A stretch of 63,969 bases of DNA, filler included, from Olpidium bornovanus S191 (taxonomy: Eukaryota; Fungi; Olpidiomycota), in assembly GCA_017911155.1 (NCBI GenBank). It is 31 parts of 31 records of this genome, joined end to end, with 100 filler letters (N's around TTAATTAATTAA, not from the genome) between each part and the next. Parts side by side here need not be neighbours in the genome. Positions count along the whole stretch, not along the records: positions 36,041 to 37,878 come from JAEFCI010004999.1; 30 more parts are not named here. One strand, written 5' to 3'. The notes under the pieces were generated by a model. That model did no database searches. It was not told the origin of the DNA and was given only the letters and a program-made list of their open reading frames with translations. Shown here in pieces: positions 35,933 to 37,992 of the stretch. Every line of letters starts with the position of its first letter. Position 1 is the stretch's first letter. A program made the position numbers and the translations under genes.

Positions 35933-36345
35933 CCCGCGGCNNNNNNNNNNNNNNNNNNNNNNNNNNNNNNNNNNNNNNNNNNNNTTAATTAATTAANNNN
36001 NNNNNNNNNNNNNNNNNNNNNNNNNNNNNNNNNNNNNNNNCTCCGAGACGCATCTGAATGCCAAAAAGCACGTCATTTTGTGCGCGACGTTTTTTTTACC
36101 GCTTACCATCGGCAGGCGCACGCGAAAAGTCAGAAGTTCCGACGGATATAAAAGCCGGACGTTTTCTCTTCGATTTTTGAGATTGCACAACTTCGAAATC
36201 CCGGACGTAACGCAAAGTCGTGTAGGTGAGATGCCTTGATTCCCAACGGGAGTTGTTTTCTTCTGGCTCCACTGCGTGCGCTTTGCGAAGGACCCCAACC
36301 GTGCCAGAACATCCGTTTCTCCCAGCTTAAATAAAGAAAGCCACA

Positions 36346-36693
36346 ATGAAGGTTGCTGTCATTGCCCTCGCCGGCGTCGCCGTCCTCGCGCAAGTCGTTT
36401 GCGCTGCCCCTCATCCCGATCCGGTCCCGGCCCCGGCCCCGGCCCCGGCCCCGGCCCCGGCCCCGGGCCCTGCCCCGGCTCCGGAGCCCGGCTACTACGG
36501 CGGCTACGGGAAAGGAAAGGGTTACAGCAAGGGCTACGCCGGCGACGGCGGCTACGGCGGCTACAGAAAGGGCAAAGGCTACGGAAAGGGCAAGGGCAAG
36601 GGCTACGGCGGCTACGGGAAGGGCAAGGGCTACGGCGGCTACGGGAAGGGCAAGGGATACGGCGGCTACGGGAAGGGCAAGGGCTACTACTGA
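36346..36693 (+). CDS. Small secreted precursor: signal peptide + (X-Pro)14 propeptide + 67-aa Gly/Tyr/Lys-rich repeat peptide
   Basis: Complete single-exon ORF. Hydrophobic N-terminus MKVAVIALAGVAVLAQVVCA; TA-rich ttaaataaag just upstream; 27-nt tandem repeats encode GYGGYGKGK. Confidence 0.85.
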   Translation: MKVAVIALAGVAVLAQVVCAAPHPDPVPAPAPAPAPAPAPGPAPAPEPGYYGGYGKGKGYSKGYAGDGGYGGYRKGKGYGKGKGKGYGGYGKGKGYGGYGKGKGYGGYGKGKGYY

Positions 36694-37992
36694 GATACTA
36701 GTTTATTTAAAAACCTGGAACATACTTGCCCCGCCTCTGTTTGTGGAGAAAAAAAGGAAAGGATTGATACAGGAATGGGAGGGATCATGGGCTGTCACCG
36801 GAAGAAGCAGCTGAGCTTTGGATAGCGTGCGGTATCAACGGGTTGGGAGCAGCCCGTCACTTGTTATAATGCAGAAACCCGCAAACAACCGGGACGGGGC
36901 CACCCCGGCGTCTGGGCCGTCGATATCCGGGATTGCGTGGAGAGACGGGAACGCCACCGGGACCCGCCGTCGACCCGGAAACGGACGTTTTTTCTGGCTG
37001 AAATTCCAACGTTCCCCCACGGCTCTTTTCCCTCGCAGTGATACGTAACCCCACAAGAAAAAAGGAAAAAATCGATTAACCGCAAAAGCTGTATTTGATA
37101 CTTAGTCGTTTAGCTCAGGCCGAAAATGATTCAAATTAACGTCCTGCAGACCTGTGGCCATGCTCTTTCAAGCCGTGCTCCTTCAAAAGGCATACTCGTA
37201 CAATTGGGCATAATGACAGCTGGCATTTGGGCCCTGTTAAATTCGTAGAACTATCGGCATATGTGAACATCCATTGAGGTACCTCGAGATCCCGCGTCAC
37301 CAACCGCCGAGGTTTCTTCTGCGCTGTCCCATCTGGTGGTTTCGGCACATATATAGCTGCCGAAGCCAGATTGATACCCAGCATAATTCTCCACAGTTGG
37401 CCGCGGGAAGCCTCTTGTCATTATTGCAGTTGTCAGCTGAACATTGAAGCAAATTTACATAACCGTGAGCGTCTAAATATCCAACAGTCCACTTTCATCC
37501 GCTTCCTCCGTCGTTGGCTTCGCCTTGTTTTGAACGACAACAACATGTGCTTGAGGTTGGATTGTTTGTGAACGGCAGCACCATGTGTTTGAGGTTGGAT
37601 TGTAATAGTTTTAAGTTTTTGCAGATGAGTTGTTAGTCCTAGTCCTAATTCATTTTTGTTCGTAAAACCTGACATCCCATGGGGTGGATGGGGAAGTCGT
37701 GGCGGACAAGGTGGCCAAAAAAATTTGAACGAAAAGACAGAAACGCAGAATGACGAAGGACGCAACCGGGACCGTTTTGTTTGCTCTCCCCCCCCGTGTC
37801 AGCCGACCGGGCCGGCTGTGGCGTCGCGATGGTCTGGCGCGGAGGGCAAGGGCGACGCCCTGGGGCTATGAAGGGGAANNNNNNNNNNNNNNNNNNNNNN
37901 NNNNNNNNNNNNNNNNNNNNNNTTAATTAATTAANNNNNNNNNNNNNNNNNNNNNNNNNNNNNNNNNNNNNNNNNNNNCATGCTATTTTCAG

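Follow-up and report, generated by a model that had tools for sequence, protein, structure and literature searches.

An orphan, intron-bearing gene in the Olpidium bornovanus S191 assembly with a signal-peptide-like N-terminus, a run of X-Pro dipeptides and a cationic Gly/Tyr/Lys repeat tail

In the Olpidium bornovanus S191 assembly (GCA_017911155.1) we identified a real, intron-bearing eukaryotic gene, an orphan, which encodes a small precursor made up of a signal-peptide-like N-terminus, a run of X-Pro dipeptides and a basic repetitive tail rich in Gly, Tyr and Lys. The reading that we favour, drawn by analogy and with a probability of about 0.42, is that the product is a secreted polycationic Gly/Tyr/Lys protein of ~6.7 kDa in its processed form that would serve as a matrix, glue or wall-hardening precursor. 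The evidence for the gene, for the fate of the X-Pro run and for the role of the tail is presented below.

Architecture of the gene and its product

The gene is the ORF 36346-36693 on the plus strand, the only convincing one in the piece at positions 36041-37878 of the window (the whole stretch of DNA analysed, 63,969 nucleotides); the piece comes from JAEFCI010004999.1. The coordinates of all features are collected in Table 1. Translation of the ORF gave a protein of 115 aa. Its residues 1-20 are signal-like and consist of Met-Lys, a 16-residue hydrophobic core and Val-Cys-Ala, with Kyte-Doolittle values that average about 2-2.9 in 9-residue windows along the hydrophobic N-terminus. Residues 21-48 read AP HP DP VP (AP)x6 GP AP AP EP, so that Pro occupies 14 of the 14 even positions; for this part (2.6 kDa) a pI of 4.35 and a net charge of about -2 were computed. 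The tail, residues 49-115, contains 33 Gly, 16 Tyr, 14 Lys and one residue each of Arg, Asp, Ser and Ala (G 49%, Y 24%, K 21%), and Cys is absent. Its computed mass is 6.7 kDa, its pI 9.9 and its net charge +13.7. By manual count, Tyr and Lys are about equimolar in the tail, with Gly preceding Tyr in 14 of 16 cases and following it in 10 of 16.

Translation thus bears out to the residue the layout proposed in an earlier, sequence-only reading of this DNA, namely a signal peptide, exactly 28 residues forming 14 X-Pro dipeptides that stop at Gly-Tyr, and a Cys-free cationic tail with a net charge of about +14. The residue counts given there for the tail were right as well, apart from the single Ser and the single Ala, which had been omitted.

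Tandem Repeats Finder (TRF) showed that both repetitive parts of the protein lie over tandem arrays in the DNA. Beneath the X-Pro run there is a 6-nt unit repeated 10.7 times (36421-36484), and a perfect (GCCCCG)6 encodes the six central dipeptides out of the 14. The GYGGYGKGK repeats are underlain by a 27-nt unit repeated 5.2 times (36550-36687, 84% matches).

Table 1. Features of the gene, in window coordinates, with the basis of each assignment.
Feature	Position	Strand	Basis
TATA-like box TATAAAAG, putative role	36147..36154	+	read from sequence
Putative non-coding first exon of the 5'UTR, start approximate	36185..36225	+	contig loose ends
5'UTR intron, 100 nt, GT-AG (GTGAGA ... pyrimidine tract-CAG)	36226..36325	+	one X1 contig
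5'UTR part of exon 2, start context CCACAATGA	36326..36345	+	contigs from 36290/36324
Signal-peptide-like N-terminus, 20 aa	36346..36405	+	hydropathy, -3/-1 rule
14 in-register X-Pro dipeptides, 28 aa; propeptide or polyproline-II-type spacer	36406..36489	+	translation, TRF
Gly/Tyr/Lys repeat domain, 67 aa, GYGGYGKGK units	36490..36690	+	translation, TRF
Stop codon TGA	36691..36693	+	sequence
3'UTR of this copy, end approximate	36694..36986	+	X1 contigs

Evidence for a transcribed gene with a 5'UTR intron

That the ORF is a non-functional frame, open by chance over simple repeats, is hardly credible. The sequence is of low complexity and all three forward frames are indeed open across the repeats, but an ATG, in a start context rated good, and a signal-like N-terminus are unique to this one. 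The GC content of the ORF is 0.70 versus 0.54 for the whole piece and about 0.45-0.5 for the flanks. GC3 reaches 0.84, and TAC is used in 16 of 16, AAG in 13 of 15 and GGC in 27 of 35 cases; read from these counts, the bias is of the kind seen with heavy translation in a genome that leans towards GC. The sole ATG, its context, the codon bias and the confinement of run contigs to the transcription unit together argue against a chance frame, as do the TATA-like box, the spliced 5'UTR and the transcript-shaped, very deep coverage described in the following.

Contigs of public sequencing runs were aligned to the piece. Those of run X1 cover 36290-36986 only, and coverage by run contigs is zero upstream of 36289 and beyond about 37032. 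Summed word depth in X1, contig depth being a poor measure of expression, amounts to 5e3-2e5 over the coding part versus 7-18 on the 3'UTR belonging to this copy, i.e. it is about 1000-fold lower there. This 3'UTR is represented by X1 contigs at 36696-36986 (4 differences and 1 gap in 290 nt; 98-99% identical) and at 36789-36942. RNA is the simplest reading of coverage shaped like a transcript, of the splice and of a depth that varies a thousand-fold. Expression, which the sequence-only reading had presupposed, was accordingly found, in X1 contigs of transcript shape that include a splice, with X1 being an RNA run by a guess on record. X22 and X16, two large raw RNA runs that bear the same organism label, gave zero reads, a result not readable as silence, and reads were found in some studies only; there are signs of sample-specific expression.

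The TATA-like box sits about 30-40 nt upstream of the putative transcript start. Loose ends of the run contigs match 36197-36216 and 36211-36223, the matches beginning at 36197. In one X1 contig, the 13 letters of 36211-36223 are joined directly to 36324/36326, which is the outcome expected from removal of the GT-AG intron listed in Table 1. This spliced contig diverges further upstream and hence derives from a paralogue or another strain, not from this copy. An X4 contig shows a different arrangement, with 36197-36216 (containing one extra base) followed by one unmatched C and then by 36290. The ~73 nt skipped overlap the 5' end of the putative intron and could be due to alternative splicing, to a deletion in a paralogue or to a different strain.

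Sister copies and strain variants

The run contigs hold several versions of the gene. In an X1 contig another 3'UTR begins directly after the stop codon (behind 36693), and in X4 a variant tail ends in ...GGWY-stop and is followed by yet another 3'UTR (behind 36640). X1 also contains a variant with a different upstream coding part, PGGSSGGFDG, that continues in frame into YGKGKG (before 36580), and the order of the repeats varies among run contigs. In X4, X5 and X9 (guessed to be DNA, with 47-49 Mb of contigs each) only the coding part and 63 nt of the 3'UTR are found, which points to a relative, or to a paralogous locus, whose flanks have diverged. Contig totals of roughly 47 Mb in these DNA-like runs, together with the intron, the TATA-like box and the start context, would suit a fungus or a protist. 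Taken as sequence evidence, the several alternative flanks point to a small paralogue family. Given these variants in the contigs, the very high depth would stem mainly from sister copies or from another strain; this copy itself is modestly represented.

At 36374, every X1 and X4 contig covering the position has C, not G, which changes Gly10 of the signal peptide to Ala. The strain or copy in the window therefore differs from the sequenced material. An exact-protein look-up with the 115-aa protein returned no record, and the difference at 36374 may lie behind this. A 2717-nt X4 contig matches 36658-36756 (99 nt) perfectly at its end and then continues into unlike, AT-richer sequence, which suggests that the locus is paralogous or rearranged, or that the contig is a chimera.

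Searches for relatives

Pfam, ESM Atlas, word, HMMER and metagenome searches revealed no homology to any described protein family beyond composition. Pfam returned sub-threshold noise only (best E-value 0.33), the ESM Atlas feature search no usable match, and word-index searches with the whole protein and with residues 49-115 at E<=10 found nothing. A HMMER scan of 1.84 billion protein representatives yielded 41 matches at E<=1e-3, the best at 1.9e-7. We read 19 of these in full and the context of the X-Pro run in all 41, and rejected them as relatives: the similarity is compositional and runs via the X-Pro dipeptides. The composition correction in HMMER penalises sequences of this kind, so that the scan does not prove the absence of homologues; a near-identical annotated paralogue, if there is any, should have surfaced regardless.

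Metagenome contigs were searched with a degenerate DNA pattern that encodes the 12-residue core of the repeats, GYGGYGKGKGYG, and a single one matched, L001 (1-560, minus strand). In the encoded protein a signal peptide is followed by a His-rich stretch, then by a domain with Cys and finally by GSGYG/GYGG repeats; the 12-residue core occurs in it. This glycine-rich protein of plant-like type lacks an X-Pro run, and its N-domain, which contains Cys, is a different one. It was rejected as convergent; the likeness is one of composition.

A protein from another metagenome contig, P0017 (L002:396-728, 110 aa), starts with a hydrophobic stretch, continues with an acidic pro-part that contains Pro and closes with Gly/Tyr/Trp/Arg repeats that end in GYYG. 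Judged by its sequence, it may represent the same design, arrived at independently. The neighbourhoods of P0017 on its contig and of P0003, another analogue, on a 50-Mb chromosome showed no informative neighbours. Literature searches on the repeat motif and on Gly/Tyr-rich proteins in chytrids or in fungal spore walls gave nothing relevant. The ingredients of the precursor are each known (DPAP-type prepro layouts, X-Pro linkers, Gly/Tyr/Lys cements, eggshells, antimicrobial peptides); for their combination, no homologue was detectable and no description turned up in the literature searched.

Fate of the X-Pro run

The X-Pro run had been interpreted in the sequence-only reading as a propeptide removed stepwise by dipeptidyl aminopeptidase (DPAP), with its even register as the telling feature. 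By the -3/-1 rule, cleavage of the signal peptide after Ala20 (V-x-A) is favoured, and 14 of 14 dipeptides then follow as X-Pro in register and with no Pro at P1', just as in substrates of Ste13/DPP-IV-type enzymes. The run halts at Gly-Tyr, a dipeptide that DPAP does not accept as substrate and that would form the mature N-terminus. To our knowledge, 14 pure X-Pro dipeptides would be the longest such run directly behind a signal peptide.

There is fungal precedent for such processing. Maturation of Yarrowia AEP proceeds through signal peptidase, a late-Golgi DPAP that removes X-Ala/X-Pro dipeptides, and then the Kex2-like XPR6, and Yarrowia Lip2 bears four X-Ala/X-Pro dipeptides behind its signal sequence (PMC6311201, PMC10095220, PMC4651352). 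AEP/XPR2 and Lip2 thus resemble the present precursor in having, in a fungus, a dipeptide run directly behind the signal peptide, and there it is removed by DPAP. The Yarrowia runs, about nine dipeptides in AEP, are shorter and of mixed X-Ala/X-Pro type, and they precede a folded pro-domain with a Lys-Arg Kex2 site and an enzyme as cargo, whereas in the protein described here, which is not homologous, all 14 dipeptides are X-Pro, Lys-Arg and Arg-Arg sites are absent and the cargo is of low complexity.

The same secreted protein might instead retain the run as a stiff spacer of polyproline-II type that arose largely by slippage of the hexanucleotide, its register being a by-product. We rate this at somewhat under an even chance, and trimming by a dipeptidyl aminopeptidase at about even odds. 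In-register runs of 7-21 X-Pro dipeptides occur in 37 of the 41 unrelated HMMER matches, 10 of which have at least 14 dipeptides. Most of these runs are internal linkers out of reach of an aminopeptidase; several follow immediately on a bacterial signal or lipobox sequence (P0008, P0018, P0034, P0010, P0015, P0033). Bacterial and other (X-Pro)n linkers can therefore be equally long and equally regular, mostly joining folded domains, and the likeness to them is compositional. Moreover, the six central dipeptides are encoded by a perfect hexanucleotide microsatellite, so that their register is kept mechanically. For these two reasons the even register is not diagnostic. Signal peptide cleavage after Cys19, which is also allowed, would in addition create the N-terminus Ala-Ala-Pro-His, with the register broken and trimming stalled after one step.

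Against a retained spacer stands the fact that an X-Pro N-terminus in a eukaryotic secretory pathway meets the Golgi DPAP whatever its origin, and the runs of Yarrowia AEP and Lip2 are trimmed. Pro is invariant throughout the run while both the residue before it (A, H, D, V, G or E) and its codon (CCG, CCT or CCC) vary in the flanks of the microsatellite, which suggests a constraint on the alternation itself, and the run stops exactly at a dipeptide that DPAP does not cleave. The original proposal stays plausible and has partial support, in the fungal precedent of AEP and Lip2; the register, shared as it is by unrelated linkers, does not count as a diagnostic feature. The run offers a clean test case for processive action of Golgi DPAP on natural substrates in non-yeast fungi.

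Nature of the tail

Several classes of secreted fungal protein were ruled out by composition, C-terminus and the absence of sites. The tail is devoid of Cys, Asn and Thr and has one Ser, and its C-terminus, ...GKGKGYY, is not hydrophobic; with no Pfam match either, it is neither a GPI-anchored nor a PIR wall protein nor a hydrophobin. A Kex2-processed repeat protein (fungal KEP, alpha-factor type) would have KR or RR sites, of which there are none; one Arg-Lys is present. AlphaFold2 (AF2) run on the single sequence, a setting in which models are often poor, predicted no fold (mean pLDDT 54, zero secondary-structure elements), consistent with an intrinsically disordered tail.

By contents of Tyr, Lys and Gly and by pI (see above), the protein has the make-up of DOPA- or quinone-tanned precursors, i.e. 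a signal-like N-terminus and a basic, repetitive chain with Tyr and Lys next to Gly. Gly, Tyr and Lys likewise dominate the composition of the mussel proteins mfp-3 and mfp-5 and of the tubeworm cement proteins Pc-1 and Pc-2. All four are, like the tail, small, basic and repetitive and consist of few residue types; they differ in being animal proteins, without homology to the tail and without an X-Pro propeptide. The Tyr residues of these cements are modified to DOPA, which serves in adhesion and oxidative curing (PMC4275877). The Tyr-rich trematode eggshell proteins of the P14, P19 and P48 families have Tyr flanked by Gly, and DOPA-quinone made by tyrosinase binds to Lys of neighbouring chains; these precursors are made in very large amounts (PMC2758302). 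The balance of Tyr and Lys and the Gly neighbours counted in the tail follow the pattern reported for the eggshell proteins and for Pc-1 and Pc-2, and by composition these proteins and the mussel foot proteins are its closest functional analogues. They, too, differ from the present protein in being of animal origin, in their repeat units and in the lack of an X-Pro run, and there is no homology.

Role of the secreted product

The sequence layout, transcription, the splice in the 5'UTR and the occurrence of variants are direct observations, as is the lack of detectable homologues. In the course of events that we infer, which covers secretion, trimming, cross-linking and the place and time of action, the precursor would be exported through the ER. 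Thereafter, with about equal chances, a Golgi dipeptidyl aminopeptidase of Ste13/DPP-IV type would shorten the X-Pro run dipeptide by dipeptide, as happens to Yarrowia AEP, or the run would stay in place as a stiff spacer. Through its Lys and Tyr residues the sticky tail would attach to anionic surfaces, and oxidation of Tyr, giving dityrosine or bonds between DOPA-quinone and Lys, would then cure it in the manner of tubeworm cement and trematode eggshell. A structural, adhesive or cross-linked role is favoured over an antimicrobial one by the very high transcript depth, the variants in repeat number and the Tyr:Lys balance; as an argument by analogy, the matrix role stays tentative and the antimicrobial one unlikely. 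Some considerations speak against this reading. The compositional analogy is weak, since Gly/Tyr-rich cationic peptides can also be antimicrobial, the X-Pro part, at -2 against +14, cannot neutralise the tail, and in-register X-Pro runs are, by the sequences compared above, generic linkers. The adhesive or cross-linker function suggested in the sequence-only reading keeps its parallel in DOPA cements and quinone-tanned eggshells and is weakened by antimicrobial analogues that are also rich in Gly and Tyr; these fit the composition less well.

A host-defence- or toxin-type peptide, unlikely as it seems, has a coherent form: the tail would be a secreted cationic antimicrobial or membrane-active peptide directed at competing microbes or at a host, and the X-Pro run a protective propeptide removed stepwise. 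Insect prepropeptides (prepromelittin, apidaecin, cecropin) consist of a signal peptide, an X-Pro/X-Ala pro-part and a cationic peptide, with stepwise removal of dipeptides, and the precursor has this classic form. The paralogue family, the very high transcript depth and the analogous layout of P0017, with its signal, pro-part and Gly/Tyr/Trp/Arg repeats, would fit as well. So would the size, the +14 charge and the Gly/Tyr repeats, which recall the C. elegans NLP/CNC peptides, glycine- and tyrosine-rich cationic antimicrobials of multigene families that are very strongly induced (PMC2453101). The NLP/CNC precursors share with the present one a signal peptide and cationic, GYGG-type repeats; they are not known to have an X-Pro pro-part, and they are not homologous. 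NLP/CNC peptides are also Arg-rich rather than Lys-rich, and the insect pro-parts are strongly acidic and carry amphipathic or Pro-rich antimicrobial cargo, whereas here, in a different lineage, the pro-part has a charge of -2 and the cargo is Gly/Tyr/Lys. A pro-part that is barely acidic cannot mask the +14 tail, i.e. neutralise it as the acidic pro-part of promelittin does. Furthermore, AF2 predicted no amphipathic or folded element, dibasic sites for the release of smaller peptides are absent, and equimolar Tyr and Lys with Gly flanks suit a cross-linking substrate at least as well. Some other extracellular role for the polycation appears improbable, be it as an effector binding host wall or pectin, as a coacervate or scaffold for anionic polymers, or as a peptide interacting with minerals or silica. 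High positive charge, disorder and the signs of sample-specific expression are compatible with any of these; nothing specific speaks for them, and neither a homologue nor a domain ties the protein to such a system.

If the favoured reading of a Tyr/Lys cross-linked glue or wall hardener is true, the tail would be a compact microbial counterpart of the animal DOPA cements, reduced to 67 aa with no Cys and no glycosylation sites, and would be useful for biomaterials and with regard to the attachment and hardening of spores, cysts and sporangia. In a bolder version, which we regard as distinctly unlikely, a lineage-restricted, massively expressed family of Tyr/Lys 'cement' proteins has come to resemble mussel and tubeworm glue and trematode eggshell by convergence, in a microbial eukaryote that might be an early-diverging fungus. 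The 14 steps of a DPAP countdown would provide a built-in delay or quality gate, so that the sticky N-terminus becomes exposed only late in the secretory pathway. The gene also exemplifies short, low-complexity, highly expressed genes that are missed by gene callers and homology searches.

Remaining features of the piece

An Rfam search of the piece 36041-37878 gave no match, and a scan for bacterial promoters and terminators, irrelevant to a eukaryotic gene, stayed at chance level. At the right edge (37750-37878) the GC content rises up to 0.60, and an ATG-started frame runs from 37750 out of the piece; as read from the sequence, it is too short and too featureless for a gene call. The non-coding, lower-GC DNA downstream of the gene contains a 38-nt tandem repeat (37525-37603), to which ORF and Rfam scans tied no ORF or RNA family and which is present in 2.1 copies with 88% matches.
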